From NCBI GenBank assembly GCA_964035545.1, contig OZ037769.1, forward strand, positions 13,422,633-13,486,632: 64,000 nt of DNA, written 5' to 3'. The DNA is from Bugula neritina. Its lineage: Eukaryota > Animalia > Bryozoa. How positions within the stretch are numbered: the first letter of the stretch is position 1; the number at the start of each line of letters is the position of its first letter. This document shows positions 7,514 through 46,282 of this stretch, piece by piece. The notes under the pieces are model-generated. The model was given only the letters and a program-made list of their open reading frames with translations, made no database searches and was not told the DNA's origin. The position numbers and the translations under genes were made by a program.

Positions 7514-10500
7514 TTAGACAGTTCTTTTAAAAATGGCCTCATTGTTTTCATACACGGTTTCTGGTACATCAAATATATCTTTGTCATCATCTGAAACAGG
7601 TTTGTTGCTGACTGGATTCTCATATATACCGGGTCTATTGCTCTGTGGGCAGTCACCGACGTTGAAACCACCTGCTGCTTCTCCCTCCTTCAAATCTCTG
7701 GAGCTGACCTCAGCATGCATAGCCTGTGCACCTGATGGACCTGGATGTAGTACTCTGTCATATAAGCCAGGGTTGGATACTTCAGTCTCATAACATATCT
7801 CACTGTCTGGTAAGAAAAATCATGAACTTTTAGCTATAGCCTGCTATAATTGGTTGTCTTAATTTTATATACAAACTGATTGTCTATATCAGGGAGTATC
7901 CTTAACCGTGGGCCACTTTGTAAAATTTAGCTTCAGCGGGGAGGGAGAGGCTGGGGGGCTCCAGCATCAGTATTTATCAGTTTTTTTTTCAAATTACTTC
8001 ATTTTAAATTTTTATGAATCATTACACAATGAAGTCCCCAGGGATTATTGCAGGCTATAATACATGTTTTAAGCGTGTATATAAATAATACATTCAAAAG
8101 GTTATATTTTTCCCCTCTAATTCATATATGTGTGCACAATAATTTTATTTGTTATGCCTTCATTGAGGGTCACATAAATTTAGACTGGGGGCCGCATCCG
8201 ACCCTGGGCCGCCTGTTAGACAGTCCTGTATGGTCTATATATAGTAGGGGTAACGAGGGGGGGGGGCGCACAACGGGCCGAATTTAGCATTTTCTGCTGT
8301 TTTTCAAGTTACTAGCTCAATAACCTCTAGTCTTAATGATGCATCTGTTGTCTATTACAGGTATCAGTTTGTTGTTTCTATTTTTCTCACAACTTTCAGA
8401 ATAATGAAATTTTCATGACGAAAAAATCGGCCCATTGTGCCCCGGTACCGGGGTACAATGGGCCACGGGGTGGGACACAACAAATATATTGAAACTTTGT
8501 GGATTTTGTTGCATCTAATCTTTATTTATTTAATTTTACAAATAAATAAAGATATTCTTTCAGATCTAAAGCAAAATTCATATTTTAGCTGTACAGTTTG
8601 TGCCACCACGGATAGCAGAGGAAGGCAAAATCAAACGCACATCACTCAGTTCTACGGTGCCATTATCATTACTGTTTAGAACTAAAAATATTGTTTTATT
8701 TTGACTTCAGAGGAACTTTTATCAGAAAAAACTTTGGTAACATGTACTACAAAATTCCGAGTAGACTTTTTTCTATAAGCTGTAGCTAAGGTGCATGGCT
8801 TCGGTTTCTGGCTGGAATACGGAAGGGAGATGGGGGAGCAAATGAGCAAATTACAATTTATTTTAGTCAAATACATGAATAATCCAATAATATAATGTAT
8901 AATGAATATCATGACTATCTATTAGTAGCAATAGCAGAGTGCTTTGTATTATGTATAAAATGGCAAAGCTTTAACCTCACCAGATGTATATATTAGGGGA
9001 GCTTCACCTTGTAGTTTGGTAGTCTTACCATGATGTCTTTGATATTTTACAAAAAGGTCAGAAATGGCTATATCTATAGATTTTATTAACATTTCAACCA
9101 ACTTTTTGGGCAAACAAATTAATAACAGTGATCAGGGTGGAATAATCAGGTGACCCATTGTGCCCCGGTCAGTGTGGCCAATTGTGCCCCGTGTGGCCAA
9201 ATTGAAAATAAATATGGCTCAAGGAAAATTTATTTTAGAGTTTGCTGTTATACTAGTTAAGCAATGTAGAGACAAGCAATGGCAACAATATCAGTAAAAA
9301 TTAGGCTTGTTACCTTTGAGTGTAAAAAGTTATAAAGCTTTAATGACATCTTAAACAATTTACAAAAAGTAGGTAAAAACAGTTTTTTACTCGCCTTTTC
9401 AACACGTATGTTCGACAAGTGTTGAAACTACAATGGCTGAATAATCATGTCAATACCTTTTTATGAAAAAAAATCACAACTCTAAGTCAATAAGTTCTCT
9501 CACAATTAGGGTATCTTTTTGTACCCCTATGACCGTTGTGCCTCCCCCCTCCCCGTTACCCCTAATAATTATTTTTACTGTATGAAATAAACCATGTGAA
9601 TCATGCATATACTAGCTAATGATTTATTTATATAATATTTAGCAATTTAATTTATTGAATCAATTGTGTTAAGTTTATGCTTTATTATGTTTTATTACAA
9701 GAATACACGATATACCTCTAAGGCAGTCTTCATCGTTGATAGTACAGTACTCAACTTCTTCAAAGGTGGCGGCGCCATCTGTGCTGGCATGTTGGAGTTT
9801 GTCCTCAAAATGAAGATTGCCTCCTGGTGCCATTGTACAATACTCACTGCTTGTTCCTGGTTTGGTGTTTTTATAGAATACCTTTTTATCTAGAAAAGAG
9901 TTATCATTGAATAAAGTTGTGAACTATTAAAGCTATATGAATTGAAAAGAAACAGCTAGAAGCTAGCATTAAGCCAAGCTCAATGGAGAGTTGGTAAACT
10001 AGGCTAGAGGTAATAAAATGAACCAACAGGAATTTATCTATAAAACAAATTAAATTTCAAAATCGCAAATTAATTGAAACCAAAGATATAATTAAACTAT
10101 TATTCACAATATTAGTGCATTATAAGTGAAGTTGGAAGCTTATACTAGATATACTGAACAAGCATTGTAATTACGATTACAAAAAGTTGTAAAGCATTGA
10201 AATGAAGTCATGAATTGAAGAATACTTTGTGGCAACAAAATTGGGCATTGGGCAGATAGATAACTTCACTTATCACAACCATAAACTAGTTAAAACTATA
10301 GTTTATATTCTATAGTCAGTTTTATAAGAGGTACCTGTTCCAGCTGATCCATTTGTTTGAGTGTTTGCTGCTGACCTAACCAAAATATATTAAATATTTT
10401 CAAATAATTACACCATTGGGTCAAGTCAATGGCTAGCCCAGTTAATTCAAGTTACATGGTCAAAACAAGCAAAATTTTGAGTGAAGCACAACTCAAGCCA

Positions 10501-13500
10501 ATATCATAAATTTGAGTCAAGTTAATTCAAGTTGACTAACATATGCACTTAACTGCAAATCAGTGCGTATTGTTTTATTTAACAGTTGCATAAAATTCTG
10601 AATTGTTGCACAACTTCGAAATTGAATAAAAATAAATTTTAATCATCAAGTCTGTTTATTTTAAACTCATTATTCAATGATGTTGAAATGTTATCTCATT
10701 ACAGTATAGCCAATGAATTTCTCTAACATAATTGAGATTATAATGTGTTCGTTTAAATAATTTTGACTAACCATTATTGAAATGCTGTTAAAATTGTTTA
10801 ACTAATGAAAATTGCATATTGTATACATACATATATACATACATATATAAATACATACATACATACATATTTAGTACTGCATATAGTGTATATACATGTA
10901 TATTACTTACCTTTTACATATACAATACACAATTATTATTTATATTACTATGATAATGCATAGTAGATAAAAATTACATATGCATTACTTTGTAATACAA
11001 CATATTAAATATAAAATATTACTGCATACATTACATATATTATTGCATCCATATTATTACATACACATTACATTATACAAAATACAGCATATTATACATA
11101 CATATTACGGCATATATTACACACATATTACATCTATATTACATGTATATTATAACACTGTTGATCTAATTTACTCAACTCACAATTTCTTCCTTCTCAG
11201 ATAAATGATGACAGCAGCTACAACCACCACCACTACCAGTAATGAAATGCCAACTATAAGACCTGCTTCCAAACTACTCAGTCTTGCAGCAAGTGGATTT
11301 CCTGCTGAAAAAGAGATAAACATGATATATACTAATGATATATCATCATCAGCTTAATATTTTCATGTTGTTCAAAACATAATATTAAGTTAGTTTCTAG
11401 TATATAACTAACATGTATATAGCAGTATATTGCTAAATATATAGCAATTACTGCTAAATATGCAGCAGCAGTACTAGCTATATAGCACCAAGAGATTTTA
11501 GTTGGTAAACAACTTTTTAGATGATTCACCATCAAAGTATACATAAACAGCATTTGAAATTGTTTTTGATGATGTTCAAAATTTCACCACTTTCTTCAAT
11601 TTGAAAGTGTGTTTAATAAAAATACTTTTTTTATAAGTGATAAACAATGTATTTTAGTTCTAAAGTAACATCTGTATATTCAAACAAAATGTGAAATTTT
11701 TCAAGCAAGGGCTAAAACTAATATAACTTTTTAATCTTTAAAGGTATTTCTTAAATTTAATTTGCATTATAACATTTAATTGCTTCAGAATTCATTCTAT
11801 AACTACATGCAAATAATATAGCAAAAATAAGCATAGTATTTCATTTTTACTTATGAAAACATAACAATTCGCGAGCATAAAATGATTAGTGTGTGGACAA
11901 CATACAAAATCACACGATCGTTTTCTGCCCATTTACACTTATACTGATACGAACAGGTCCTCATTAGGTATTTACACCTTTATAGGCTGCATTGAACAGC
12001 AAGTTACTGCTGGCTCAAATCTTAACAGGAAGTGGTAAAACACTCAGCATAAGCTGACCAACAGCAGCAGAGGCAGCTGTGATCTAGGGGCTAGAGCATT
12101 AGTAAAGAGTTTCATCCCAAATGGCCGCTTTCCACTTAGACGCTACTTTTTATTTTGGTACGATATATATGTGGGAAGTGTCTATGTAACTGCATGCCCT
12201 CCTAGACTGACATGAAGGTTTCATACGGGTGTATTTTTTTAGTGTAGTTTATTTTTCACTAAAGTTGTTCACATCATTAACGCCGCAATGCTACAATTTT
12301 TTCATAAAAAAAAGATTAAAATATGAGAGAATAAGAGAAAATTCAACTTAGAGAAGTACATACAACAGTTTGATAAATTGCTTGTTTTATAATTATTAAA
12401 ATATTCAACGTAATAGTACAGATTAGCAAAGTTATAACATATAAAAGCATACCCCTTTCACCCTTTCTAGGAGAGAGTTAGTAGTATAAGTAAGAAATAT
12501 TTTACGCCATGGGCGTTGTGAAAATAGCTAATTTTATATGAGAGTAAATGTGAATAGAACCTTGTCTTCTGAGGGTTTTTACTGTTGTGTCCTGGCTAAG
12601 TGTGTATATCTGTTTTGCACTTATTTTCTTAGTCATGATTTTGAGTGCAATATCAGAATGTGCTTGATTGTAAAGCAGTCGGTTGTTACAGTGAGTGCAG
12701 TCAGTGCAGAATAAAACATTTTACTCTTTCACGTACACGCAATATACCTTGTTAGTGTAGGGCCACACGCCGTGACGTGCGAGAAAACTCGTTTAGCCCA
12801 AAAATTAGACGTCGTGAGCGGGATTTTCATGCATCTAACATGCTGAGTGAGAAGTGCGGCAAGCTCGTGCGTGTTTGATCTAATTAGCTTATTATCATTT
12901 AGCAAGCACACTTATTTTAATTCATTTTAGCTTTAATTCATTTCATTAATTTTAGCTTTTAACGGACTGAATTAAAACAGTTTCATATAGTTTGCATTTC
13001 TGCTTTTGTAATATTTAAAGTCACTTTGCTGATGACGTATTTTAAAAACAAAAGTCTGTAGGCGAGCAGCAAAGTTTAACGCTAACATCATTAGTTAATA
13101 AATTTCTGCACTCGCAACACACGCATTGTGTGTGGCATGTCTATGCGGGTACGGGTTTTCTCGCAAGTCACGGGCGTGTAAAACGCTTAGTGTGACCCTA
13201 CGCTTACACTTACTAAAATGGTCATGAGGATAAAAACAGTGACAAAACAAGTGCTAAAAATACAATAAAGATGGATGATTCATCGCTGTTGGAATATGTG
13301 ACAACACAAAGGTAGTGTGGCAATGTCAGTAAATGCTAAATTGCTAAATGAGATATTATAACAGCTATGAACAAATTGGCAGCAAAGTGTCAGTAAGCAA
13401 ACTAATAAAACTAAATTTATGAAATTTTATTATTTATTACCAAGTACACTACAGTCTATTTGAAATGACACGTAGCAACGGTAGTTGGTGATGTTAAGAA

Positions 13501-16500
13501 GTGAACCCAGTCATAATTGCTCCTTTGACACAACCGACAACAAACCTGCCTAAAAACTCTTTCTATAAAGAGTTCACATTGAGTTAGTGACTATATAAAC
13601 CCACAGGAGGTCTTTATAAGCTGACCAGCTAAATAAAGCAGCTTGATTGGAAGTGGTAAAGATGAGTTACCTTCCTTAGCTGTGATGGAAGTCAGCTTTG
13701 TTGTCTGACTGTTATTTGATGAGTTAGTAGAAGGACTTGTAGGTGTAGTTGTTGTAGGTGTGGTAGCAACAGTAGATGCTGTAATCATATAGGGGTAGAT
13801 GTAAATGTGGGAGTAGTAAATAAATTTCGCCATGAAATATGTAAACTGAATATATTTATGATATTTTTTATATCTGAAATATGTGTGAAGGCTTAACAAA
13901 AACATAATACTTGCATTGGAAGTGCCATTTTATCAACTATGGAGTTAGGACACATCTATCAGATACTATAAGTGAAATTATACTTCATAGCAATAAGGTG
14001 CATCTTTTTTGCTTATTTAGCAGTACACAAACTATTAGTTGTGTTTAAATACTGCATGGTAAACTAATAGGCTTTAAAGTTACATTTTAATGTTATATTA
14101 AAAGCTAAATTCATCTGAATAATCCCAATAAATGACAGTCTTTGATTAGCAGTAAACCTTCAACATTACTAACCTGCATACTTAAATAAAAACCCTTTAC
14201 GTTGTTGACTATCATCAGAATAAAACTGTATAGTTATACTAAAACTTATACTGGATGCATTGAACGACCTCCATGTCTGTAGGTAACTGCTTGCATTTTG
14301 GTGTTGGCAGATTTTAGAAGAAGCAGCTCCTGTTATTATGACATAATCATAACATCGCTCATGTTCTTCCAGATTCAGATCGACAAAGTAAATGTCTACT
14401 GTCACAATGTTGGTGAATGTTAGTGTAGAGTTACTTCGTGGTCTGTAATCAAGTGGACCATAGCCTGGGTGACTAACTACATAGCCTGAGGGCTTACGCC
14501 TGGCATCTACTTCTATCGATTGTGACGAACCTCCCATATGTATTACACTGGCCACTAAAGAAACATATTTTTGCATAAATTTTGAGAAGGTGAAAAATTG
14601 CATTGTGCCCATAAATACCAACTCCTATTCCAACCGTTGAAAATAAAACTTTATGCAAGACAATTTTAGGCCAAGCATATTGCAATTTAATCAAAATTAA
14701 AACTCTTAGTTCATTGAGTTTACTGTCTTTCTCAAACCACATTTCCTGTTTGTGCAAAAAGTATATTGAGAATAGTGAATCTGATTGGCTTAGATTATTT
14801 CAGCCGCTAGAATAATCTCTAATAAAATATTTGACAGTATTTGGCTAGCAGTAAACCTTTAATGCTACTAACCTGCATACTTAAATAAAAACCCTTTACG
14901 TTGGCCACTATCATCAGAATAAAACTGTATAGATATACTAAAACTACTAGATGCATTGAACGACCTCCACGTCTGTAGGTAACTGCTTGCGTTCTGGTGT
15001 TGGCAGATTTTAGAAGAAGCAGCTCCTGTTATTATGACATAATCATAACATCGCTCATGTTCTTCCAGATTCAGATCGACAAAGTAAATGTCTACTGTCT
15101 CAACATTGGTGAATGTTAGTGTAGAGTTACTTTGTGTTCTGTAATCAAGTGGACCATAGCCTGGGTGACTAACCACATAGCCTGAGGGCTTACTTCTGGC
15201 ATCTACTTCTATCGATTGTGACGAACCTCCAATATGTATTACACTGGCCACTAAAGAAACATATTTTTGCATTTTGAGAAGGTGAAAAAATTGCATTACA
15301 CCTATAAATATCAACTCTAATTCCGACCATTAAAAATAAAGCTTTATGCAGAAAAATGTTATGCCAAACATATTACAATTTAATTAAAATTAAAAGTCTT
15401 AGTTTATTGGGTTTTCTATTTGATAACTGTTTTCCTCAAAACCCCTTCCCTGCTTGTGTGAGAAATATATTTAGTTTAGTGAATCTGATTGGTTTAGATT
15501 ATTTCAGTTGTTAGAGAAAATATTAGGAAATATTTCCGCCATTTTGACTTTATAAGCTTTACTTTAAAATAATATATATTAGGACTAATTTATATTTAGT
15601 TAAATTTGCCAAAATGCTTTAACTCTAATTTTTTTTCTTTAAAGCAACAGTTTAGCTTTGCGCTTTAAAAATAACTGTATGGCATTGGCCAAAGTAGCAC
15701 AAGATTGAAATGTTTCATCAATTGTAATATAAAATGCAAAGTTCATTTTGACATATTTCTCATTTAAAATAGCCTAGCTAGTAGCCTATCCATAGTAGTG
15801 CTTTTTATTATTATTCCAAAATTGGCATAAAGCTACCCGACAGAAAGAAAGTGAGCCAATTCATCAATGAGCCCCATTAGGCTACGCCTATAGGGGAATC
15901 CGAAAGTGCCCTAAAAGATCACAGTACAAATATTTGGACCAAGTGGTTTTGGGCAATGCAATGCAACTTGGTCAAATTGAATTTCCGACAGAAAATTGTG
16001 AAGGTATAAACACAACTTTACGCTTTTTCTAGAAATAATTCTGCTCAAGTCTAGCATATGCCTTACTTAATAGTGTGATAGTTTTGTGGATTGTGAATGA
16101 AACTAGTGCTGTTACATGCTTGTATGAGAAACAAGACGAGAAATAAGGTAAATGTAGATAATCTTTATTGTAGTATAGTCCGAGTGAATCAATGGTCTTT
16201 ATCCAGCGAGCTCCAGTAGTAGACTGAACTATACTGGAACTCGCTGGCTTTTATATACATGCAGGACAAAGACATTCCTTTGTTTGCCGAGATCGGAGGC
16301 CCGAAATACCGAATATCGGTACCTCGGGAATCCGAAATGCCGAATCCGGCATTTCGGTACATCGGTATTCCGATATGCCGAGAATCGGCATATCGGTGTT
16401 TCGGAGGACCGAAGTACCGATCTCGGCAACAAAGGACACACACACACAACATAAATTTACCACACACACCCCCCATCGGAAAGCATGCTTTCCGATAAAG

Positions 16501-19500
16501 AGGCGTACACAACACAAACACACAACAGGGAATGACACGACAATAAAACGCACAGTTGGAAGTAACACACAAAAAAAAATATGGTAAACATGCAGTGATA
16601 GTAATAATACAATGATAACGCAAAAAAAATACAGGGAAGATTTGTGCACACACAAGAAAAACAGAGCATGAATAGGTACATGCATTACATGAAGAACTTA
16701 CACACATATAATAAACAAACAAAGAATAAGAGTAGGAAAGAAAAATACTATACGAATAGTCTCAGCGGCGGTCGCCAGAACGACCCCGCTCCAGGCGGCT
16801 AACTCGTCTCCGGAGTTGCCCCAGCTCCTCTTCACATCTGCGGAGCTGCCGGCGTAACTGGTGGACCTCCTCTGCCAACTGAGCTGACGTCTGGTGCCTA
16901 GGGCGGTCGGTAGTACCACGGGCAGGACGTCGCTGGCGGTGCGTCTGCTTCTCGCCCGCCGCCGAGGGTCGGGGGCCCAGGTCCGATGAATCGGCCCTGG
17001 CACCTGGTCCGACCCGTGCCAGCATGACCCGAAGTGGCTGGGTGGCTGCCGGTTGGGGTGTCGCGGCGGGCTCCCCTTCTTCCTCCCGAACAGGCCTACA
17101 CGCGGGGAATCCCAGGGCGAGAGCAGCCCGTTTGTGGGGATCCGCCACGTGTGGCAGCACCAGGTCCCGAAATTCGGGAAAGGAGGCCTGGTCTACAGCA
17201 AACGTGTAGCCCGTGTGGCAGTGAGCTATGCGTTGATGTCTCAACACATAGTCCCTCTGGTAGGAGAACTCCCCACACGGGCAAAACACGTTGATGTAGT
17301 GCTGTTGGGCGTGTACGCGCAACCGCCGTGCAGAGGAGAATTTCCTCTTACACTCATGGCAGATGCGGTTGCCCGGCTCACCGCAAGCATCACCAATTTT
17401 CAGGTTGGTGGGTCCAGTCACCCAATACTGGCGGGCGACCAGGGCCCGAGGCAGGGCCAGTATCGGGGAGGTATCTTCTTCTGCTGGCAGGTGGTCGCCG
17501 TGTAGGATGCCCTGCTCCTCCCCGGCCGTGAGCTGAAGCTCGACCGGTTTGGGGTCAGGGCCAACCATGGCGGAACACACCTCTGTGGAGGAGGTGGCGG
17601 CCTGCTGGCTGGTAGAAGCTGAAGCAAGGCCCGGTGGGAGAGGGGAGTCGGACCGACTGGCCTCCTCAACGTCCATTCGCTCCTCTAGAATTGATAGTAG
17701 AGGCTGTGAGAAGCCGGTCTCACTATCGCCGAAATTCGGCACAGGTGTGTATGGAGATAAGTTAAGAACCGAGGGCCGAGGTGTATCGCAGAAATTGACT
17801 GAGCCTACATCGTGATTCAACAATGTATCAATGGCAGAGTCATCTCCGAGATCCATCTCGGCCTCCGGTTCTAAGATATCAGAACCAAGTAAGTCTAGTA
17901 AAGACCAGTCTACTGTAGTTTGACTAGACTCCGCAACTGGAGGATCTAATCTAGAAGAAATACCTGATTGTGTATCTGGTAGAGTAATTCCCATAGCTGC
18001 TGATAGCGTACGGAGAACAGTGGTAAAATCAAAATGAGTATTAAAATCAGAATTTAGTTTGAGTTGCAACTGCCGTGCGAGCTGTGTGAAGTCAGAATGA
18101 GAAATGGCCGAACCTCGTGCTTCAGAAGTTTTACCTGCTGAAGCCCGAGTCGCGTGGCTCGTGGGAATTTCCCCCGGATTTCGAGAAGACAACTCGTGTG
18201 ATCGAGTGTCTCCCGAAATTCGGTCGGCCATTTCTTCTTCTTGGTGGAATTCTCCGGGGTGATGGAGGGAATTTCCAACCAAGATGAGGTGGCAGTCAGT
18301 GTGGGGGGGGGTCTTCCTCAGGAGGGGGCCCCTCCAGGTGTCCTACGGCATAGTCTGCCAGGTACCTGGGAGGTCTTCTTGGCCGCTGGCTCCTCTCAAG
18401 TGGAACAGACTCTGGTGGTGTTGGTGGCTCCTGGGCTGCCCTGGTAGGGGGGTCCCCGTCTTCACCCCGTACGGGGGTGGGGGTGTCCTCCCCCGGGAAG
18501 GGTTGTGAGCCAAGGGCTTGCTGCTGTTCCTGCTCCCGCTCCGCTCTCTGCTGTCGCTCCAGCTGCTCTATCAGGGCGGCTTGCTCCTGGTCTGCCTCCC
18601 TGGGAACCATAATCTCCACCTCACGGGGCCGGGTGGCCCGTCCACGATGGTTGGGCTGACGGTGGGGCTCCAAGAGGGGTGGAGCCTGACCCACCGCGTC
18701 TGGGCTGGCATGGTAAGGTTTGAGGCGCTGCTCGCTCTGGACAGAGACCTGTCCAGAGCGCTCCACACGGTATGTGTGGTTGGGCAGCACCTCTACTACG
18801 CAGTAGGGGCCGACGAACTTGGGCTGAAGCTTAGCCGACTGTCCGCGCCGCCTACGGTAACTCACCATCCAGACCCAGTCTCCCACTTGGTACAACGGGG
18901 GCTCCTCTGAGTCCTCTGTGCGGGTCTGCCACTGCTGGGTGCGCAGCGCATCATGAGCTTTGCCCATGATGTCCATCAGACCCTCCACATATTCGTGTAC
19001 CGGTGACTCGGGGGCAGGAACATGGTACGTCAGGTGTTCCGGGACCCGCGTCTCCCGGCCTAACATCAGGAAGTTTGGGGTCTCCTGCGTGGCGGAGTGT
19101 GGTGTGCTGCGGTAAGCCCGCATGATCTGCGGCAGCACCACGTCCCATTCTTCCTGACCTCGACCAAGCAGCAGGCTCCGGAGCGCGTCACCCAACATCC
19201 TGTTGTTCCGCTCGACGACTCCGTTCCCTTGCGGGTGATATGGGGTGGTCCGACTCTGGTTCACCCCCCATATCCGGCAGAGGTCTCCCATGAGCTGGGA
19301 CTGGAACTGGGCGCCCTAGTCTGTATGTATCTGCTCGGGCAAACCGAGGTAACAGAATACATGTTGGTCCAGGGTCCGGGCCACCGTGGGGGCGGTGGCG
19401 TCTGGGATAGCCAGAGCATCCGCCCACCGGGTAAAGTGATCCGTGAGCACCAGTATCCAGGTGTTTCCTCTGGCGGATAACGGCATAGGCCCGACGAATT

Positions 19501-22500
19501 CTTCCGCCACTACTTGCCACGGTCGACCAGCGTACAGCCGGCGTCGACCAGTGGTTTCCGTGGGGCGGCCATGCTTGCTAGCTTGGCAGACCTCGCATTG
19601 CCGTACCCGCAGTCGTACGTCCCGAGTCATTCCGGGCCAATACCAACGCAGCCGCAGACACCTGATGACCCGACTGACTCCAGCATGAGCCTGCTTATGG
19701 GTGTCCCAGATCAGTTCCCGCCGGAGGGCGCGTGGACAGACGACGCGATCCCTCTTCTGCTGGCGGTTGTCTGCTGCTAACGTTATCATCAGGAGGCCAT
19801 CAGGACTGACCTTGAGGGCATCCCAGCGACGACAGAGGAGTTGGAACTCAACGTCTCCCTGCCGCTGCTGTTCCTCGCTAGGTCGTCGGCCCTCCTTCTT
19901 GGCCCGGAAGATGTCCGCTACCGCGCCGGGTAGCGTCTCCTGGAGTCGGCACAGCTCCTTGACGTTCTGGTGCAGAGTAGGGTTGGCGTGGAGCGCCTGG
20001 ACACCGTCCTGGTGGGTTTCGGTCCGAAGATGGCCGTGCTCCCACCGGTAGGCGGTGCCCTCCACTAGCTCCGTTTCCACGTCAAGGCGAGCGGGTCCCC
20101 CGTCCCGCTGTTCAATGTGCAGGCATTGCTTACAGTCCTCTACCGGCCGGCGGCTCATGCCGTCGGCGTTCCCATGCTTCCAGCCTGCACGGTGCTCTAT
20201 ACGGTAAGAGAACTCGGCAAGAATCTCTAGCCAACGAGCCACCTGGCTCGAGGGCTCTGCACGTTTACACAGCCATATCAGTGACGCATGGTCTGTTCGC
20301 AAACGGAACGATTTCCCATACAGATATGGCCGAAAGTGCTTGACCGCCTTGACTACTGCTAGGAGTTCCTTCCTAGTGGTGCAGTAGTTCTTCTCGGCGG
20401 CCGCGAGAGTCTTGCTATAGTAAGCCACGACCACCTCACTTCCACCCTGGACTTGAGACAGGACGGCTCCCACGCTGTGGTCGCTGGCGTCGGTGTCCAG
20501 GATGTACTCCTTGGCTGGATCAGGATACGCCAGGATTGGCGCTTCCATTAGCCGTTGCTTGAGGTGGTCGAATGCCTGCTGCTCCTCCTGTGTCCACTGC
20601 CACCGGACTCCCTTTGCGGTCAGCCGATTTAACGGCTGAGCCACTCCTGCGAAACCAGGTATGTACTGCCGGTAGTACCCTACTAGGCCCAGGAATGCAC
20701 GCAACTCAGGGAGGTCGCGGGGGACAGTCCACTCCTTCACAGCTTGTACCTTCTCTGGATCGGTAGCGACCCCATCACGGCCAACCACATGGCCCAGGTA
20801 TGTGACTTCTGGCTGCAGGAGTGCGCACTTGGAGGGCTTCAGCTTCAGTCCGGCTGCCCGGAGACGGTCAAAGACCTCCCGCAGACGACTGACATGAGTC
20901 GAAAAGTCTGGGGAGATGACAATGACATCGTCCAGATAGATGAGGAGGGTCTTCCAGTGTAACCCACTGAGGACTTGCTCCATGAGCCGTTGGAATGTTG
21001 CCGGAGCGGACGTTAGTCTGAATGGCAGTACTTTCCACTTCCAGAGCCCGTCGCGAGTAATGAATGCTGCTTTGTCCTGGGCATCAGGACTGAGGGGCAC
21101 TTGCCAGTACCCGCTAAGCAGATCCAAAGTACTGAAGTACTTGCTACCCGCGAGGGCATCTAGAGACTCATCTATCCGTGGGAGAGGGTAGGCGTCCTGG
21201 ATGGTAGCGTTGTTGAGTCTGCGGTAGTCTACGCAGAATCTCCAGCTACCATCCTTCTTCTTGACCAGGACCACTGGGGAGCTCCACGCACCGTGGGCAG
21301 GCTCAATCAGATCCCGGTCCAGAAGATCCTGTACCTGTCGGCTCACCTCCTTCTCCTTCTCCGGGCCCAGACGTCGGGTAGGCTGCCTGATGGGAGTGGT
21401 GTCGGCTGCCAGGGGTATCTCGTGAGAGATAACCTTAGTCAGCCCCATGTCTCTATCGCCACGACTGAAGACATAACTGTACTCCGCTAGTAGTTGAGCC
21501 AGTACTTGGCGTTCAGTACTACTCGTACAGTTTCCGCATGCTCCGCCATACAGGTCAGCCAGATGCTCCGGGACTGCTTCTCGTCTGGTGTGAGGGGGGT
21601 TTCCCTGGTTGTCGGCCACTGTCTCCAGTGCCGGACCCACATCCGCTTCCTGGATGGAGTGGTACTTCCCCACCAGCGCTCCAGCCGATAGTTGGACAGG
21701 TTCCGTGAAGGGGTTGATGCACTGCACGAGGAGCTCTTGCCGACAATCTAGCCGATTCAGGCTGTTTGCTAGTCGGATGGCTCCGTGCGTTCCTTCAACC
21801 ATCCCCAGGCCGGCGATCCCCTTGCAGTTGACTCTGCATCGGAGAGTCGCCTGGGACCTCCCCGGAACTGTGCAGTCCCGCACTACCTGGACTCCGCCCA
21901 CCAAGGGCCTGCCAAACTTGTCAACACAGACAAGTTTCTTCCCAGCCATCACCACCACTGACTTCTGGAAATCCATGTGGCACTGGTGTTTCTCCAGGAA
22001 GGGCATTCCCAAGATGGCGTCCTCCTTCAGCTGGCTGACTATAAACGTCTCGTGAACTGCTTGATCACGGACGCGTCCAGGTAGTGAAATGACGCCGTAG
22101 AAAGGAATGCATGATCCGTCCGCCAACGTACCATGCGCACCTTCATACGGCTCGAGGCTCGCCCGCTCTCGTGCACCAAGGGTGTCAAAGAGACGCCTAC
22201 TCAGCAGGTTGGTAGTGCACCCAGTATCCAGTAGGAATGTGGCAGCTTTACCCGAAATCTTCCCGGGCAGGAAGTAGCTGCTTCCGTACGGCTGGGTGCT
22301 CCTGGAGCGGTCAGTCTCTGGGGGAGACACGACTTGGGTCCGCACAGCGGGCCTCCTCTTCGTCTTAGAGACAACGGGGGTTTTCTGAGGTCGGGAGGGT
22401 AGCTTGGGATACTCTTGCGAGTAAGCTGAATCCTCCTCCACAACCTCCTCGGGCAACCCCGCGAACCGGTTACGGAGTGGCCAGGCTGGAGGATCGGGTA

Positions 22501-25368
22501 GACCTTGCGGCCTCCGAGATCTCCGAGGTGCCTGCCATCCGGTTTCTTCTAGTTCCATCCGGGTATCGAGTGGCAGGGCAGGAGGATCGGGTAGGCCTTT
22601 CGGTCTCCGAGATCTCCGGTTTGCGTGCCACTCGATATGGGTCGACTCTGGAGAGGTCTCTTCTGTGGTCTTCCGAGTCCTATCCCGGACCGGATTGGCG
22701 TGGGGCCCACGGGTGGCGGAATTCACCGTGAGCCTCGGGTGTTTAAAGGCTTCTGTCCCTTAGGGCAGTGCCTTCTCACATGTCCTGGCATCCCGCACTC
22801 CCAGCAAGTGGGCATAGGGGGGCGGACAGGGTCGTCCCGCGAGCGGGGAGCTCGCCTGTCCGTCTGGTTGCGCTGCAACTCCGTCACTGTAGCCTGTAGG
22901 CCTTTCATCATGCTCATCAGCATGTTGAGCTGCGTCTGCTCAGGTGACGGGGTAGCTGCTGCTGCCACTTGTGGGGTTGGGGGTACCTCTTCTGCATCTC
23001 CGGCCACCTGGCGAGCTGCGTAGTTCGCCCTCCGTGGCTCTTCCACCTGGAAGTAGGCCTTCCCCATCTCTAGTGCTTCGTCCAGGCTCTTGACTTTTGC
23101 GGCTAGCCAGTACCGCTGGAGGTCCGGGTGGTTCACACTCCGGAAGAACGCGTTAAAAACGAGGCGCTTCCGATCGTCGCCAGTGGCGTGACCGAAAGCA
23201 GCCTGAGCCAGGCGCTCTACCTCGTTAGCGTGATCTTCCAGAGATGTCCTTCGGTCTCTCCTCATCACTTGTAGCTGGTCTGACGCCTCTTCCGTGGTCA
23301 ACCCGAACCGAGCCCTAAGAGCCCGCAGGATGTGGGCTTCGTCGGGTCCCAGTGCGAAGTTCCTGGCCCGGCCTGTCAGACAGGCCCGGAGTTGGAGGAC
23401 GCGCACCCGTACTGGCCATTCAGCGGTGGCGGCCACGTCCTCGAACTCCTTGATGAACTGTTCCACGTCTCCATCTCCTCCGAAAGTCGGGGGCTGGAGG
23501 CGATACCTGTCACCAGGTGCTGCCTGTCCTTGCCCCCGCAATCCCTGGAGGGCTGTGACCAGCGCCTCAATAGTGAGGGCTGGTGGTGCTGCTGCCTCAG
23601 GGGCTGGGTCCCCTGGGGCCATCCTATTTCTCTTAGCAACTAGCTATTCGTAGAATCCCACCGCTGCCACCAATGTGATAGTTTTGTGGATTGTGAATGA
23701 AACTAGTGCTGTTACATGCTTGTATGAGAAACAAGACGAGAAATAAGGTAAATGTAGATAATCTTTATTGTAGTATAGTCCGAGTGAATCAATGGTCTTT
23801 ATCCAGCGAGCTCCAGTAGTAGACTGAACTATACTGGAACTCGCTGGCTTTTATATACATGCAGGACAAAGACATTCCTTTGTTTGCCGATATCGGAGGC
23901 CCGAAATACCGAATATCGGTACCTCGGGAATCCGAAATGCCGAATCCGGCATTTCGGTACTTCGGTATTCCGATATGCCGAGAATCGGCATATCGGTGTT
24001 TCGGAGGACCGAAGTACCGATCTCGGCAACAAAGGACACACACACACAACATAAATTTACCACAATAGCTTATAACTGTTGTTTTTCACTCACCTCTATA
24101 GGTGATATTAAACCTATCGGCAATCCTCATGTAGTCCGAATAAAAGTGCACATCTTGTGAAGTTTTTATTCCCAAGTAAACATATGTATTGTTCTGTGGG
24201 GCCGGGTCACAAATCCTGGAATCTGAACCATCTACCTTTATATACGAAATCCCAGTTTCACAGTTTGAAAATCTGTTTACACAGTCATAGAAGGATTGGC
24301 AAGACAGAGTAAATGTTTCCATTTTGAGTTCGAGCCAGGAATATTCCGGAATACCAACAAGTGTCAGCGTGCAGTTGACTTTACGTGCTGACTGAATTTG
24401 TGGACTGATTATGCTACCTTCAGTACCAGCTTCAATCACCTGTGGTGATGTGTCACACATTGTATACGAAGCACCTGAAATCAAACATCGTGTGGGAGTC
24501 TTAATAAGACAAAGAAAGATTAGAAATATCAAAGGCATCTATATGATACAACTGACAAATAAAAAGTATACATTATAAACTATGTCAGTCATTTTACTAT
24601 ATTACGGTACAGCAGAGACAGAGAAGCTTTAATTGCTTGAGTCGTTTAATTAACTCTATAAATTTTGATTTTGGAGATCAGATTGAACTTCTATGGAAAA
24701 CATAACTTCTTTTAGCTATTTCTACCATCCAAAACATAGGCTTTTAACTGTAATTTCTTAGACACGTTTAATACCAAATATGTACTTCAAGACTAAAATT
24801 TTCACCATATGCATCTAACTCAAAGGGTTACATGTTTTCTTATGTAGAAGTAACTTGCAATGTCAAAACTTGTTTTTGAAAACACATAAATTAAATGCCT
24901 GCATGACCAAAGAGAAAAGAATTGCAACTTCTTATTAAATCTTTTAAGAACCACACTTTTCTTTTATGCATACATTTAAATTAAAAACACAATAGACCAG
25001 AGGCATGCAGACATTTATAAAACTTTTACCTCCACTGAAATTTGAACACGGAGACCTCTGGCTTTCAAGCAGGTACCCTACCTGTGCGCCACAGGGGCAG
25101 CTGGGTAAACTCAACATCACTACACAATCTTGTAGCAGAAAAGTTTCTCTGGTTCTACATGCAGTTGCTTTAAAACTGAGTTATAGAATAGCAAAAAATA
25201 CCAATATAGTATATTTATGAGTATGTAATAAAACTAATATATCACTTGCCCTACAAAATGCAGCTAACTTGTAAAAATATTATACATACCATCAGCACTG
25301 CACTTCATTATACCCAAGAAGAAGGTGAAGAAGATAATAATCCTGTATGTGTTTTTGTATTCAGTCAT
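7514..25368 (-). CDS. CUB-domain type-I membrane receptor paralog C (SP-CUB-CUB-CUB-mucin-TM-ITIM tail), ~651 aa
   Basis: Phase-consistent GT-AG exons: 25368-25290 (SP), 24474-24094 (CUB1), 15250-14873 (CUB2a), 14554-14174 (CUB2b), 13778-13671 (Thr/Ser stalk), 11304-11184 (TM GLIVGISLLVVVVVVAAVIIY-LRRKK), 10375-10335, 9889-9716 (SEYCTM, VEYCTI), 7806-7514 (LYDRV, IYENP, VYENN, stop). Total 1956 nt, no internal stop. Confidence 0.85.
7890..8228. mobile_element. hAT-type MITE shared by paralogs C and B (B copy 30554-30839)
   Basis: CAGGG...CCCTG termini. The B copy is flanked by GTCTATAT / GTCTCTAT (8-bp TSD, 1 mismatch). Confidence 0.6.
8245..9564. mobile_element. Non-autonomous TIR DNA transposon (TA-flanked, Tc1/pogo-like) in the last intron of gene C
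   Basis: ~30-bp TIRs TAGGGGTAACG(A/G)GG..GCACAACGG / CCGTTGTGCCTCCCCCCTCCCCGTTACCCCTA; internal CCCATTGTGCCCC repeats. Absent from paralog B (~30850). Confidence 0.75.
10823..11155. repeat. (TACA)n and degenerate ATATTACAT minisatellite in the intron after the TM exon (expanded copy 32175-32635 in gene B)
   Basis: Direct reading of low-complexity tandem units. Confidence 0.8.
12755..13203. mobile_element. Longer, older copy of the Harbinger-type MITE
   Basis: Starts GTGTAGGGCCACACG after TTA and ends GTGTGACCCTACGC before TTA; both ends similar to 7356-7490. Confidence 0.7.
16074..16464 (-). repeat. 3' LTR of E1
   Basis: Direct repeat of 23674-24064. Minus-strand TATATAAAA (16249-16257) and AATAAA (16164-16169). 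PPT GATGGGGGGTGTG abuts at 16465-16477. Confidence 0.97.
16762..18231 (-). CDS. E1 ORF3: C2H2-type zinc-finger / coiled-coil accessory protein (~489 aa from first ATG; frame stays open further upstream)
   Basis: CHECKRKFSSARRLRVHAQQH and CPCGEFSYQRDYVLRHQRIAHC; acidic N-terminal half; C-terminal heptads LAEEVHQLRRQLRRCEEELGQLRRRVSRLE. Homologs in E2 and E3. Confidence 0.85.
   Translation of the reverse strand: MADRISGDTRSHELSSRNPGEIPTSHATRASAGKTSEARGSAISHSDFTQLARQLQLKLNSDFNTHFDFTTVLRTLSAAMGITLPDTQSGISSRLDPPVAESSQTTVDWSLLDLLGSDILEPEAEMDLGDDSAIDTLLNHDVGSVNFCDTPRPSVLNLSPYTPVPNFGDSETGFSQPLLSILEERMDVEEASRSDSPLPPGLASASTSQQAATSSTEVCSAMVGPDPKPVELQLTAGEEQGILHGDHLPAEEDTSPILALPRALVARQYWVTGPTNLKIGDACGEPGNRICHECKRKFSSARRLRVHAQQHYINVFCPCGEFSYQRDYVLRHQRIAHCHTGYTFAVDQASFPEFRDLVLPHVADPHKRAALALGFPACRPVREEEGEPAATPQPAATQPLRVMLARVGPGARADSSDLGPRPSAAGEKQTHRQRRPARGTTDRPRHQTSAQLAEEVHQLRRQLRRCEEELGQLRRRVSRLERGRSGDRR
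18296..22747 (-). pseudogene. pol: E1 pol (protease, RT, RNase H, integrase), entered by -1 frameshift; premature stop in integrase core
   Basis: LLDTG protease; LDLLSGYWQV and YLDD RT; TDASD..YYSK..TDH RNase H; H..H..C..C integrase zinc finger; GNGVVERNN; GPY motif. HTD-TAG-GAQF at 19316-19318 where E3 reads HSDQGAQF. Confidence 0.93.
22700..22747 (-). promoter_or_regulatory. -1 programmed ribosomal frameshift signal, E1 gag-pol
   Basis: In-phase slippery heptamer U UUA AAC (22741-22747), 6-nt spacer, 9-bp stem GGCUCACGG/CCGUGGGCC. The -1 frame reads directly into pol (..RLTVNSATRG). Confidence 0.85.
22723..23622 (-). CDS. gag: E1 Gag with CCHC zinc knuckle
   Basis: PPTFGGDGDVEQFIKEFE capsid-like start; CWECGMPGHVRRHC knuckle; ATG 33 nt after the PBS. 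Confidence 0.93.
   Translation of the reverse strand: MAPGDPAPEAAAPPALTIEALVTALQGLRGQGQAAPGDRYRLQPPTFGGDGDVEQFIKEFEDVAATAEWPVRVRVLQLRACLTGRARNFALGPDEAHILRALRARFGLTTEEASDQLQVMRRDRRTSLEDHANEVERLAQAAFGHATGDDRKRLVFNAFFRSVNHPDLQRYWLAAKVKSLDEALEMGKAYFQVEEPRRANYAARQVAGDAEEVPPTPQVAAAATPSPEQTQLNMLMSMMKGLQATVTELQRNQTDRRAPRSRDDPVRPPMPTCWECGMPGHVRRHCPKGQKPLNTRGSR
23655..23672 (-). other. Primer-binding site of E1 (tRNA-Leu)
   Basis: TGGTGGCAGCGGTGGGAT, 1 nt from the 5' LTR, complementary to the tRNA-Leu 3' end ATCCCACCGCTGCCACCA. Identical in E2. Confidence 0.9.
23674..24064 (-). repeat. 5' LTR of E1
   Basis: Direct repeat of 16074-16464; adjacent to the PBS. Confidence 0.97.
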
Positions 25369-28300: not shown

Positions 28301-28549
28301 AGAAACACCTTTGTAAATATGAAAGTTTGAGCAATCCTAATATCCCTAACAAATATGCATTGTTTTCCATTCACAAAAGCTGTATCATAATGATTTCAAC
28401 ATATGCAGTTCCTGGTTGAAGAGTGTTCTAGTAGTGTATAGTTTTAAATAAGAAAGTCTTACATTATAACTCCAATGTAAGAACCACTCTGTCATTATTG
28501 TACACACGGGTAACACACCATTTACTTCTATTATAGCTACAAAAAAACT

Positions 28550-29508: not shown

Positions 29509-29637
29509 CTATAAGCAGCTCCGAGTTGGAGGTGACTGAGTGCAGTAGTTTGGAGTTCTCAAGTTTAGAGTTGAGTCCCAAACATGAGAACTCCAAACTA
29601 CTGCACTCAGTCACCTCCAACTCAAAGCTGCTTATAG
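29509..29637. mobile_element. Fold-back MITE copy
   Basis: Same inverted repeats as 6652-6762, with a longer spacer. Confidence 0.75.
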
Positions 29638-30243
29638 AGCAACGCAACACAGACACCTTCGGAAACTTTCGAATTCTATTTTGCTGTTTAGATCAGCACC
29701 TAAAATACAAAGGCTGCGTTTAGAGAATTCTACTAACTTGCACACAGACACCTGTAGTGTTGAGATTACCCCGTGGTATAATGGTTAGCGTGTCTGCTTG
29801 CAATCCGGAGGTCCCGAGTTCGAATCCCAGTGGGGGCAAATATTTTATAACTCTCCTAAGCAACTGCATGGATACCAACAAGAATGTATAAAAGTATCAC
29901 ATTCTTACTGGGTATTTGCATCTATCTAATTAATGATGAACATGCACTTAGAAATTTGAAAATAAAATTTGCATATTGAAGATAAAAAAATAGAATAACT
30001 TAGCTAAAGTATTTTTATTTTGTAAGCTACTTTCATTCATGACTGTCCAAACATAGTTTTAGTTGCAGCAGCAGCTCTAACCCTAAGTGAGTGATGATTT
30101 ATATTATATTATATTATATATTGTTTATATTATATTAAATATTATTGTATTATATGTGATGTAAAGTTGCTTATACCCATACTAGTTATAGTAAAGTTTT
30201 AATTGAGAAACATAAATCTATTAATAATAACTCCCCTACCGTT

Positions 30244-42900: not shown

Positions 42901-45900
42901 GTGTCGAATGTTCAGGTGATCTAGACAACTGGAGTTGCTAAAATCCAAATCTAACGAATCAAAGAATATTTCTACTGTGTTGGAGTCGAGGTTGGTCAGT
43001 GTGAGAGTGGAGTTGATGCTGCCTCTGTAGAACTCGCTGACGGAATGGTGGCCATATATGTAGTTGGAGTGACTCACGACGAATCCGGAATATTGCCCTT
43101 CTGTGTCAACTGTATGACTCGGGGTCAGCTCGCCGATGTCTATGACACTCGCAACTGCAAAACATTGAGTTGTGTTTTTTTAAATACGAAGCTTTTTAAT
43201 ACGAGTTGTTTTATAAGCAGCACCGAGTTGGGGGTGACTGAGTGCAGTAGTTCAAGGTTTAAATTGGAAGTTTGAACTTCAAACGTGAGAGCCCCAAACT
43301 ACTGCACTCAGTCACCCCCAACTCAGAGCTGCTTATAGAACAATTCTTTTAATACAAGCAGCTGGACAATATGACTAGGACTTATCTGCAGAGTTTACAA
43401 ATTTAACTCTACAGGAGCATGTAAGTTTTCTGCTCATGAATTGATGCTGAATTATTATAACTTTAGTGCATTAAGAGTAAATAAAACGTAAGCTCTGTAT
43501 TTAGCTGCTATATGTTAAAATAACAATTTTTGTTTAATAAAAAGTTACTTTTGTCAACAGCGAATTTTGTCAACAAAAACTAATCTGGAACATTATTTTA
43601 TTTCTAAATTATTCCCTTTAAGATAAACTAAGCAAACCAATACACTATAAACTAACGTAATATAATAAAAACTAATATAATTATAATATAATATAATATA
43701 GTATAAAACAATAGAATATGAAACAACATAATATAATACAATATAATGTAAAACAATATATCATAAATCAATAACATAAAACAGTATAATATTATAACGT
43801 GATATAACATAATATAATATAAGATAGTGAAGTTTCCATCAGTCTCACCTGTATAGGTAAGCATAAATCTGTAAATCTCCGCCCTGTAGTTGTCAGAATA
43901 GAGTCTCACTTTGAGTGAGCCGGCGTAGTTCTTGTAGTGATAGATGTAGGTGGGGGCGGGTTGGCAGAGCTTCACCCCTAACTGATCCACCTGGAGGAAA
44001 GACTCTCCAGTCTTACACCAAGTGCCCCAGCAGCTGTACTGTTGCACGCAGGGCAGGTTCAGGGTGTTGGCTTGCAGCCCAAACCAGGAATTTTCTGGAA
44101 TCCCTGTTAGCTCAAGATAGCAGTCGACAGCTTGGTCAGTTGTGAGGGTGGGGCTAATGATTCTCCCCTCCGAGCTTGCAGCAACTTGAGAGGTACTTGG
44201 GCTACACATGTAACTTGGCCCTAAAACAAGTTAATGTATTTTGTTGCAGGGAACAACACAGATTTGAAAGTGCACATATTGTCTTGGTTTTGCGCTTTGT
44301 TTAGTTATGTTTTAGCGATTGAAAAAAGAGCTACTATACTATATATACAGAGAATAATCTGCTATATATAGCATGATATACTAGATAATATAGTATAATC
44401 TACTCTATTTAGTATAATATACTAGATTGTATATAATGGACTATACACAGCCTAGTATACTTTACACAGTATAATATACATATACACACATGCAGTATAA
44501 TCACCTATACACAGTATATTATACTATACACAGCATATTATATTATACACAGTATATGATACTATACACAGTATATATGATATATATATCATATATACTA
44601 GTAGTATACTACTACATGAACAGTCTCAATTACTACACATATTTTAGAAAATGCTTTAGAATTGACAAGCCATTGAGTAAAGTGGAGATAAGAACAAACA
44701 AATTATTTATACTTGTATATAAAGTAGGGCACAATAAGTGGTTTTGTTGACAAAAGATTAAAGATTTGCTGGTAAAAAATCTTTTACAGAAATGTTTTTG
44801 CTGATGTTTCGTAATATTTGAATGTAAAAGAATATTTTCAACACAACAACAGGTTATTAGGTAACACTTTGTAAGCAGAACCCTAGGTAGATCATTTATC
44901 AGGACACTAAGTCTCTTGTAATACGAGGATATAATTTCACAGTTCATAATTCACATCAGCCCATAATATCGCATTTCTCTTTTTCATAAAGTAGACTAGT
45001 AGGTTTTAAATATTGTCACGCTTAACCAACCATGAGCACATTTTCTAGTATGACAAGTTTCTGTATGACAGTAGGAAGAGGGCTCTCCACCACCTCCCCC
45101 CTCTCTCCATATTATAAACTTGTGTTATAAACTTGTCTATATATGCTGATGGAACTTTAAGCTTGACTTAATTTCGACATGTAAACAACCAAATAGGTTT
45201 AATTAGCGGTTTAATTAAAACGTGTATCGAATTGCACCAAAATGTTGTCATAAACTAACATAGCACTTGTAGGCTTTAATCTAAATAAATAAAAATGCTA
45301 ATCCAAATGTAAATTAAAATGTAACATGTTGAAAATGCAAAATATCTAATTTAATATGTATGCAATTTGGAATAATCTAGAAATTTTATGTCAAGTCACA
45401 ATCAGTTTCTATGGGAGCAAAGGATGTTGCAATTGTTTTATATCTTTTTTTGCAGTAGCGCTATTAAAGCATCAATCAAATCAATTGCCTAATTGCAGTG
45501 GAGATGAGATGTAGATTATAGAACTGAGGAATTACACCAAGTCACTTTCAATTACCACATCAAGTGATGAAATTAACAGGCTTTTTTGCTAAACCAATTA
45601 TTTCTTGGCTTACTTAAGGGAAGATGATTTCACCTACTTAAGTTTTTTCAAACGAAATTTTGCTGAATGGTGTTGGTTTGCTAGTAGAAAATATTGAACA
45701 GAAAAAAAACTGCCCCCCCCCCTTTCCGAAGGATTCATATCTTAAGAGTCAAGTAGTGTGGACTTTATTTACTACTCAATCTTATTTACTTTAAACTTGG
45801 GTATCTTGATTTATACAAACTCAATTTCCTCCTAATATAGGCTTCTTGTTTCATTTTTAAACTTTTGTACAAGCTATGTTTCAGTGTATAAAGAAATAAT

Positions 45901-46282
45901 TTTTGATGAACATATTTATTACAATAATTTAATTAATACTGTTTTTATAGTTCAAGAACAAGTAAAAACATTCATCAGATGCTAATTTCAGGGACCTATC
46001 ATTTTGCCATTGTCATTCGTGAAGGTGGAATCTTTTTAGCAAATGATAAATTGTCATGTTGAGATATTAAAGCTAAATTTATTATTTATGACAGATTTGA
46101 TGGTACTACCACGTTTTGAAAGCATAATATAGGACAGGATATACTTGTATATCTCCAGGACACGTGCGTGTTACTATGTGTCCTGGCGTAGCTAATACTG
46201 CTATATACTTACTAGAGACTGCCTTCACCAATTCCACTACAAACAAGGAGATTAGAAGCTGTTTAAGTAGGTGTCTCAACAT
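39932..46282 (-). CDS. Divergent CUB-domain type-I membrane receptor paralog A (SP-CUB-CUB-long mucin stalk-TM-Tyr tail), ~618 aa
   Basis: Exons 46282-46213 (SP MLRHLLKQLLISLFVVELVKAVS), 44220-43849 (CUB1), 43154-42747 (CUB2), 42312-41698 (205-aa Thr-rich), 41408-41255 (TM ..MMLIFIVIIAVVVV-KRRK), 40990-40908, 40370-40235 (ADYKLV, PYYDSP), 39950-39932. Same exon phases as B/C through the first tail exon; the last exon is least certain. Confidence 0.8.
43206..43343. mobile_element. Fold-back MITE copy in gene A intron 2
   Basis: TATAAGCAGCACCGAGTTGGGGGTGACTGAGTGCAGTAGTT ... AACTACTGCACTCAGTCACCCCCAACTCAGAGCTGCTTATA. Confidence 0.75.

Follow-up and report, generated by a model that had tools for sequence, protein, structure and literature searches.

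The gene cluster described here occupies about the first 46 kb of a 64,000-nucleotide stretch of the Bugula neritina genome (contig OZ037769.1; hereafter the window, meaning the whole stretch that was analysed), and its genes, named A, B, C and D, are predicted to encode surface receptors in which two CUB domains are carried on a mucin-like stalk above a tyrosine-rich cytoplasmic tail. Weighing all of the evidence below, we consider, with a probability of roughly 0.55, that these genes form a bryozoan-restricted family of CUB scaffold or adhesion co-receptors of the CDCP1/DCBLD kind and not a family of dedicated inhibitory receptors. A first-pass annotation of the same DNA had described tandem CUB-mucin-transmembrane (TM) receptors with tails bearing an immunoreceptor tyrosine-based inhibitory motif (ITIM), and had proposed them as a lineage-specific inhibitory family and a candidate immune or allorecognition locus. 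The architecture and arrangement that it described hold up well, while the functional proposal fares less well.

Gene models and domain architecture

Comparison of the window with itself reveals four minus-strand paralogs in a head-to-tail tandem array, all within 46 kb, in agreement with the tandem cluster of A, B, C and a left-edge D recognized at the first pass; the span assigned to it then (7514-46282) has the stop codon of C and the start codon of A as its exact limits. Clustering of membrane genes in tandem is a feature of Alr- and fuhc-type allorecognition loci, and with four paralogs it is found here as well. Exon boundaries were read from the sequence and all homology searches were run exon by exon (Table 1). 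Every predicted exon has an AG acceptor and a GT donor, matching phases and no in-frame stop, and the tails that had been spliced by hand are coherent, with canonical sites and phases that fit across the tail exons. Phase 1 closes the signal exon and stands on both sides of the CUB1, CUB2 and mucin exons (each 1-1); the TM exon passes from phase 1 to 2, a middle exon of 35-83 nt from 2 to 1 and the Tyr exon from 1 to 1, while the last exon opens in phase 1 and continues to the stop. Extracellular modules spread by exon shuffling classically have such phase 1-1 exons. The signal-peptide exons, which were located with the N-terminus of a B. neritina protein, lie 0.8-0.9 kb upstream of every B-type CUB1 exon.

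The gene models are supported by three independent checks. Between B and C, the net indels in exons are all multiples of three (6/6; 6, 6, 3, 3, 69 and 6), compared with 35/97 of the small non-coding indels, and by our own estimate the chance of six in-frame exon indels at the non-coding fraction is about 0.002. For gene A, the eight-exon model was transferred to Bugula neritina draft contig VXIV02003459.1 of assembly GCA_010799875.2 (L001), where the exons sum to 1887 nt and reproduce the annotated 628-aa product with the same start and end; the exons show 96-100% protein identity, whereas the introns differ by about 14%.

The order of the predicted products is signal peptide, CUB1, CUB2, a Ser/Thr/Pro mucin stalk, one TM helix and a disordered, acidic Tyr-rich tail, which bears out the CUB-mucin-TM architecture proposed earlier. 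The TM helices of A, B and C are uncharged and are followed by RRKK or KRRK. Against Pfam PF00431 (cut-off 21.4 bits), scores were 27.1-32.2 bits for CUB2 in B and C and 20.1 bits, slightly under the cut-off, for CUB2 in gene A, while the CUB1 exons have no Pfam matches at all; by the Pfam criterion, a CUB domain is present in domain 2 of B and C only. Pfam scans of every tail, TM and mucin exon matched no family.

The CUB fold is a beta-sandwich of about 110-125 residues. A profile-profile comparison of CUB1 with CUB2 gave a probability of 94% (E = 9e-8), and the AlphaFold model of the B CUB1 domain is all-beta (predicted local distance difference test [pLDDT] 80, predicted template modelling score [pTM] 0.73), with low confidence in a loop at residues 55-75. 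A Foldseek search of this model against the PDB returned almost only CUB domains (TM-scores 0.5-0.6, best E = 3e-4), including those of MASP-1, neuropilin, Kremen, Neto2 and spermadhesin. On the profile comparison and the predicted fold, CUB1 is a divergent CUB domain that goes undetected by Pfam.

Aligned with MASP CUB domains, the CUB2 domains of B and C appear to retain the calcium-site Glu (NLE), Asp (YDY) and Asp/Ser (SDNS), whereas the CUB2 of gene A lacks these residues in the same alignment. The B and C domains would thus resemble the calcium-binding CUBs of MASP, C1r, C1s and cubilin, keeping the same Glu/Asp/Asp/Ser positions as MASP and, like MASP CUB1, lacking the first disulfide pair. 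Those proteins differ from the bryozoan ones in being secreted proteases or peripheral membrane proteins, and the calcium residues have been lost from gene A.

Table 1. Genes, exons, tail motifs and the intronic element of the receptor cluster (window coordinates)
Feature	Position	Strand	Remarks
Gene A	46282->39932	minus	8 exons; splice sites, phases, match to L001 annotation
A signal exon	46213-46282	minus	further in-frame ATG at 46306
A CUB1 exon	43849-44220	minus	
A CUB2 exon	42747-43154	minus	
A mucin stalk exon	41698-42312	minus	204 aa, Thr/Pro-rich
A TM exon	41255-41408	minus	KRRK
A small middle exon	40908-40990	minus	
A tail exon	40235-40370	minus	YKLV, PPYY
A last exon	39932-39950	minus	includes stop
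Gene B	37214->30244	minus	8 exons, 501 codons, no internal stop
B signal exon	37136-37214	minus	
B CUB1 exon	35958-36338	minus	
B CUB2 exon	34725-35102	minus	
B mucin exon	34280-34387	minus	35 aa
B TM exon	32669-32795	minus	RRKK
B small middle exon	31660-31694	minus	
B Tyr exon	30958-31128	minus	GYCAM, VEYCTI
B GYCAM	31070-31084	minus	
B VEYCTI	30980-30997	minus	ITIM-consensus hexamer
B last exon	30247-30470	minus	stop 30244-30246
B YEIP	30343-30354	minus	last exon
B YENN	30271-30282	minus	last exon
Gene C	25368->7514	minus	9 exons, 651 codons if both copies of the CUB2 exon are spliced in
C signal exon	25290-25368	minus	
C CUB1 exon	24094-24474	minus	
C intron 2 Ty3/Gypsy retrotransposon	16074..24064	minus	long terminal repeats (LTRs) 16074-16464 and 23674-24064, 99.5% identical
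C CUB2 exons	14873-15250 and 14174-14554	minus	tandem duplicates, 87% DNA identity to each other
C mucin exon	13671-13778	minus	35 aa
C TM exon	11184-11304	minus	
C small middle exon	10335-10375	minus	
C Tyr exon	9716-9889	minus	SEYCTM, VEYCTI
C SEYCTM	9831-9848	minus	
C VEYCTI	9738-9755	minus	ITIM-consensus hexamer, within 14-residue block EEVEYCTINDEDCL, identical in B
C last exon	7517-7806	minus	stop 7514-7516
C YENP	7613-7624	minus	last exon, block conserved with B
C YENN	7541-7552	minus	last exon, block conserved with B
Gene D	126..1823	minus	5' part only; signal 1745-1823, CUB1 126-506; remainder past left window edge

Tail motifs and the proposed scaffold function

The tail motifs reported at the first pass (VEYCTI, YxxM, YxN and YxxP) are all present on the minus strand where they had been placed. 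Tyrosine makes up 4.7-7.5% of the B and C tails, which have seven tyrosines in common, located in small conserved islands amid variable sequence (EEVEYCTINDEDCL, SEICYETEVSNPG, YE.PVSNKP.SDDDKD and VPET.YENNEA). The tails of B and C each contain one hexamer of the ITIM consensus [ILVS]xYxx[ILV], which is absent from A and appears in about 19-21% of per-exon composition-preserving shuffles of the tail. Counts of Yxx[LIVMF] are likewise no higher than in shuffles, and the sole motif that stands out is YxN, with three copies in the C tail (shuffle P = 0.006). Each ITIM and YxxM here doubles as a YxxPhi endocytic or sorting signal, and among the tail motif classes YxxPhi alone is shared by A, B and C (YKLV in A; in B and C, YCTI, YCAM or YCTM, together with YDRV or YNRV). 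The gene A tail, which carries YKLV and PPYY and has no ITIM, is 100% conserved in L001; the gene B tail also contains NPGY. Other docking motifs were considered and set aside: about 30 residues separate the two EYCT[MI] tyrosines, compared with the spacing of 6-12 residues required in immunoreceptor tyrosine-based activation motifs; the C-terminal KRTV and KKND are both unfit as class I PDZ ligands; and no immunoreceptor tyrosine-based switch motif occurs in the tails.

As a scaffold or adhesion co-receptor, such a protein would use its CUB pair to bind an extracellular protein ligand, with the CUB2 domain of B and C probably contacting a basic residue of the ligand in a calcium-dependent manner and the variable Cys-rich loop of CUB1 taking the position of the usual CUB binding loop, while the O-glycosylated stalk would keep the pair off the membrane. 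Ligand binding or clustering could then lead to phosphorylation of the tail tyrosines in their acidic contexts, and the resulting phosphotyrosines (in YxN, YxxM, YxxP and the one [ILVS]xYxx[ILV] motif) would dock SH2 or PTB adaptors; when unphosphorylated, the same tyrosines may act as YxxPhi sorting signals.

A CUB ectodomain joined to an SH2-docking tail would not be a new principle, since CDCP1 binds SHP2 through two phosphotyrosines (PMC4395315) and the YxxP motifs of DCBLD1/2 bind CRKL once Fyn or Abl has phosphorylated them (PMC6029619). CDCP1 resembles the predicted bryozoan proteins as a type I glycoprotein with a divergent CUB-like ectodomain and a short multi-Tyr tail that Src-family kinases phosphorylate (PMC4395315), but it has three CUB-like domains, no mucin stalk and other tail motifs. 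DCBLD1, DCBLD2 (ESDN) and neuropilin similarly present a CUB-containing ectodomain on a single-pass scaffold receptor, and the bryozoan CUB1 has the a1 CUB of neuropilin among its best structural matches. These receptors, however, have LCCL, discoidin or MAM domains that are absent from the bryozoan genes, which instead combine two CUBs with a mucin stalk and have one or two YxxP motifs per tail. Profile searches against solved structures gave only MASP, neuropilin, cubilin and PCPE CUBs, with no indication of CDCP1 or DCBLD orthology, and the domain order differs. The relation to CDCP1 and DCBLD would therefore be one of functional analogy only, and not of orthology.

Several observations weigh against the scaffold reading. 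The tail of A is unrelated in sequence to those of B and C, which counts against assuming a signalling output common to the family. Outside the short islands, the tails may be weakly constrained, as the ratio of non-synonymous to synonymous divergence (dN/dS) between B and C is 1.6 in the Tyr exon (3 synonymous versus 19 non-synonymous changes) and 0.64 in the last exon. Because B and C are recent duplicates, the motifs that they share are weak evidence. Word searches with the Tyr exon and last exon of C found no relatives, and two scans of JGI metagenome contigs with B+C tail-exon alignments gave pattern matches of which none was confirmed by tblastn, so that motif conservation rests on one recent duplicate pair. 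We infer the expression and splicing of these genes from their sequence, and some copies may be inactive: gene C has taken up a retrotransposon of about 8 kb at a distance of 24 bp from one of its donor sites, and the reading frame of the B-type CUB1 exon at L001 10858-11234 shifts near codon 50.

It is also conceivable, although we think it unlikely, that these are endocytic or scavenger receptors whose CUB domains capture ligand for uptake in a cubilin-like manner and whose tail tyrosines serve mainly as unphosphorylated sorting signals, among them YxxPhi for AP-2, alongside acidic clusters. The presence of YxxPhi as the sole tail motif class in all three complete genes is consistent with this, as are PPYY in A and NPGY in B (compare PPxY for Nedd4-type ligases, and NPxY), and the calcium-site residues that B and C CUB2 appear to retain are those used for ligand capture by cubilin/MASP-type CUBs. 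On the other hand, the Yxx[LIVMF] counts lie within shuffle expectation, the tyrosines stand in strongly acidic contexts typical of kinase substrates, and the YxN enrichment in C points to SH2 docking. Use of one tail for both sorting and SH2 docking is common, and uptake of ligand would be compatible with a scaffold function.

Divergence, exchange and integrity of the copies

Gene A is kin to the B-type genes at the protein level only (41-45% identity in CUB1 and 36-40% in CUB2). B and C share 81% identity in non-coding DNA and 83-98% in exons, with a synonymous divergence (dS) of about 0.2, and are by this measure recent duplicates; the CUB1 of D is 90% identical to that of B. Exon duplication, mosaic exchange and a recent retrotransposon insertion characterize B/C/D as a young subfamily that, to judge from its sequence, is still duplicating.

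When the first large exon of gene B served as query, a word search led to the Bugula neritina hypothetical protein EB796_024849, encoded on L001, and positions 46972->34174 of the window are colinear with that contig at about 85-87% nucleotide identity. The synonymous divergence of gene A (~0.15) and a non-coding divergence of about 14% set the window lineage apart from the Virginia draft, and imply that the window genome and GCA_010799875.2 represent separate lineages of the B. neritina complex, or that one is a close congener. B. neritina is a known cryptic-species complex, with which this divergence fits.

The two lineages differ little in gene A. Outside the mucin stalk, 395/402 residues are identical (dN 0.007, dS 0.153, ratio 0.05), and by these values gene A is a one-to-one counterpart in the two genomes that is under strong purifying selection. 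Gene A also occurs on JGI metagenome contig L008 at 99.9-100% identity to L001; the draft assembly was polished with related Illumina data (PMC7576161), so that L008 and L001 may not be independent. In the B-type genes, dN/dS is 0.26-0.42 for CUB exons between the B, C and D paralogs and 0.46 for B versus its positional counterpart in L001, remaining below 1 overall in all CUB exons. Another JGI B. neritina contig, L010, has 97.7% intron identity to L001 with a dS of 0.04 in CUB2 and 0.18 in CUB1, and appears to be a mosaic best explained by exchange between paralogs; the region compared, with exon-scale mosaicism in CUB1, is L010 3-356 versus L001 10889-11234.

Among six B-type CUB1 sequences, in which possible alleles and paralogs are mixed and inseparable, amino-acid changes are concentrated in codons 55-95, with a dN/dS of 0.59 versus 0.20 elsewhere. 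A few sequence pairs exceed 1 in this region, which was picked post hoc and involves small numbers; as it was chosen after the alignment had been seen, it provides a lead and not a test. In the predicted structure, codons 55-95 are the Cys-rich, low-confidence loop that stands in place of the canonical CUB binding loop.

These patterns bear on the inhibitory function suggested at the first pass, in which phosphorylated VEYCTI would recruit an SHP or SHIP phosphatase and polymorphic CUB domains would serve innate immunity or colony/kin allorecognition, a reading that we regard as very unlikely. The hexamer of B and C does sit in the best-conserved block of the tail, the tandem cluster is still expanding, B-type CUB1 variation is focused in the Cys-rich loop that corresponds to the usual CUB binding site, the L010 mosaic places a CUB1 dS of 0.18 beside a 97.7%-identical intron, and the host is colonial with reported kin aggregation (PMC10078279). 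Moreover, the clustered and duplicated type I genes, the tail tyrosine motifs and the colonial marine invertebrate host recall Hydractinia Alr and Botryllus fuhc/fester. The ectodomains of those receptors, however, are Ig-like or sushi-type and extremely polymorphic, whereas the present genes have CUB domains and gene A is nearly invariant. As an inhibitory signature, the hexamer is found in B and C as claimed, yet it is missing from A, arises in roughly a fifth of shuffles and doubles as YxxPhi. Paired activating relatives are common, though not obligatory, for ITIM receptors; no such relative with a short tail and a charged TM residue is seen among A, B and C, all of which have uncharged TM helices and long tails.

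The polymorphism on which allorecognition would depend is likewise only partly in evidence. B-type genes are the more variable, as seen in the mosaic and the CUB1 loop, yet their overall dN/dS is below 1 in the CUB exons and the variable region was selected after the fact. The gene A protein is nearly invariant at a dS of 0.15, the opposite of a hypervariable determinant, which contradicts this role for gene A. Direct evidence for an immune or allorecognition locus is absent, with alleles and paralogs inseparable in these data and no tie to a fusion, rejection or immune phenotype.

There is similarly little probability, in our view, that only gene A is functional while B, C and D are young duplicates drifting to pseudogenes with tail motifs as leftovers. 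The tail dN/dS of 0.64-1.6 between B and C would fit such decay, as would the frameshift in the draft-genome B-type copy, and no transcript-derived protein was among the matches of a profile search of 1.84 billion proteins. In gene C, the element in intron 2 was inserted 24 bp downstream of the CUB1 donor in the gene's own orientation, with a 4-bp target duplication (ATAG). All 17 of the B and C exons are nevertheless open with intact splice sites, all exon indels keep the reading frame, and the CUB exons have a dN/dS of 0.26-0.42. The frameshift, which explains the truncated 91-aa annotated protein EB796_024849, comes from a long-read draft and may be an assembly indel or a real pseudogene.

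The window is AT-rich overall (~33% GC) but contains GC-rich islands, at 16-24 kb and at 55-64 kb, and a tRNA scan of its whole length found none. The cluster is accompanied by several repeats. A 2.1-kb block present at 5256-7355 and 28116-30223, with 95% identity between the copies, sits 24-160 bp 3' of the C and B stop codons, the genes themselves being 81-90% identical; this indicates that the units have recently undergone conversion or unequal exchange, or that they share an insertion. A dispersed repeat of ~130 bp (window 6648-6768, 29503-29643 and 43205-43344; L001 3534-3647) matches in both orientations in a palindrome-like fashion, and looks like a miniature inverted-repeat transposable element or a short interspersed nuclear element; gene A has one copy in its CUB1-CUB2 intron, and the 3' flanks of B and C contain others. 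AT-rich tandem arrays in or beside the family genes (32342-32634, 43658-43826 and 44432-44600) include 27 copies of an 11-mer in the intron that follows the B TM exon, TAATA x 34 directly after the A CUB1 exon, and 19- and 38-mer arrays upstream of the gene A CUB1 exon.

Three GC-rich Ty3/Gypsy elements were found at 16074-24064, 54878-60141 and 60142-64000, the last being cut by the window end. All three have an extra minus-strand open reading frame (ORF) between the integrase and the 3' LTR (16762-18282, 55521-56318 and 61454-62527), and these ORFs share 27-34% mutual identity, a CxxC...HxxxH zinc-finger-like motif and a coiled-coil-like C-terminus; they matched no Pfam family. The element at 54878-60141 has 100% identical LTRs (54878-55229 and 59790-60141) and a target duplication of ATAT. 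Its ORFs include gag zinc-knuckle and integrase zinc-binding domains, while a reverse transcriptase domain was not detected in them, and the element is probably non-autonomous or internally deleted.

Taxonomic range and possible role in recognition

A CUB1 profile search of 1.84 billion representative proteins produced 22 matches at E <= 0.001, nearly all of them unnamed exon-sized fragments, in keeping with the lineage-specific family proposed at the first pass. The matches that span the domain are unnamed exon-sized ORFs with 23-35% identity, and come from short AT-rich contigs of one Logan run, of Tara and other ENA metagenomes, and of JGI B. neritina metagenomes. The CUB1-like exons of L002-L007 (Logan SRR25569774, and ENA scaffolds from Tara and other metagenomes) are on short eukaryotic contigs of 33-39% GC and have the same apparent exon limits. 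Several of the CUB1-like ORFs open with the first Cys and close with YRG or YKG, at the point where the bryozoan exon also ends, which suggests that the exon is conserved. No CUB2 exon was found beside the CUB1-like exons of L005-L007 within the 0.7-1.1 kb of downstream sequence examined. None of the matches is a named full-length relative aligning across CUB1, and the annotated 628-aa B. neritina protein did not come up in this search. The long matches (a Mya arenaria repeat protein, a bacterial BACON-domain protein and unnamed proteins of 904-2127 aa) look spurious, aligning over short stretches only. To judge from these searches, the family is restricted to a narrow lineage and consists of predicted bryozoan type I membrane glycoproteins.

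The B, C and D genes might further be imagined to function in bryozoan kin or colony recognition, in gamete recognition or in recognition of a vertically transmitted bacterial symbiont, with the Cys-rich CUB1 loop as the specificity determinant, but we consider this highly improbable at present. Under such a scheme, duplication and exon-scale exchange among paralogs would diversify the loop, the Tyr tail would serve for its read-out, and gene A, which is conserved, would represent the unvarying ancestral receptor. If true, this would be the first recognition locus known from Bryozoa, and no earlier one would have been built from CUB domains. To our knowledge, almost no surface receptors have been functionally described in Bryozoa, and we know of no recognition genes.

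Whichever function applies, the cluster represents an uncharacterised and narrowly distributed receptor family with a Pfam-invisible CUB variant and clean exon models. It offers a compact case of the birth of a receptor family, in which phase 1-1 domain exons, exon duplication, paralog exchange and a very recent retrotransposon occur together, and in which a strongly conserved founder gene, A, adjoins fast-changing copies. Should the CUB1 loop prove polymorphic in populations, kin or symbiont recognition would have a concrete candidate in this locus; otherwise, the family would be an ordinary lineage-specific adhesion or scaffold receptor.

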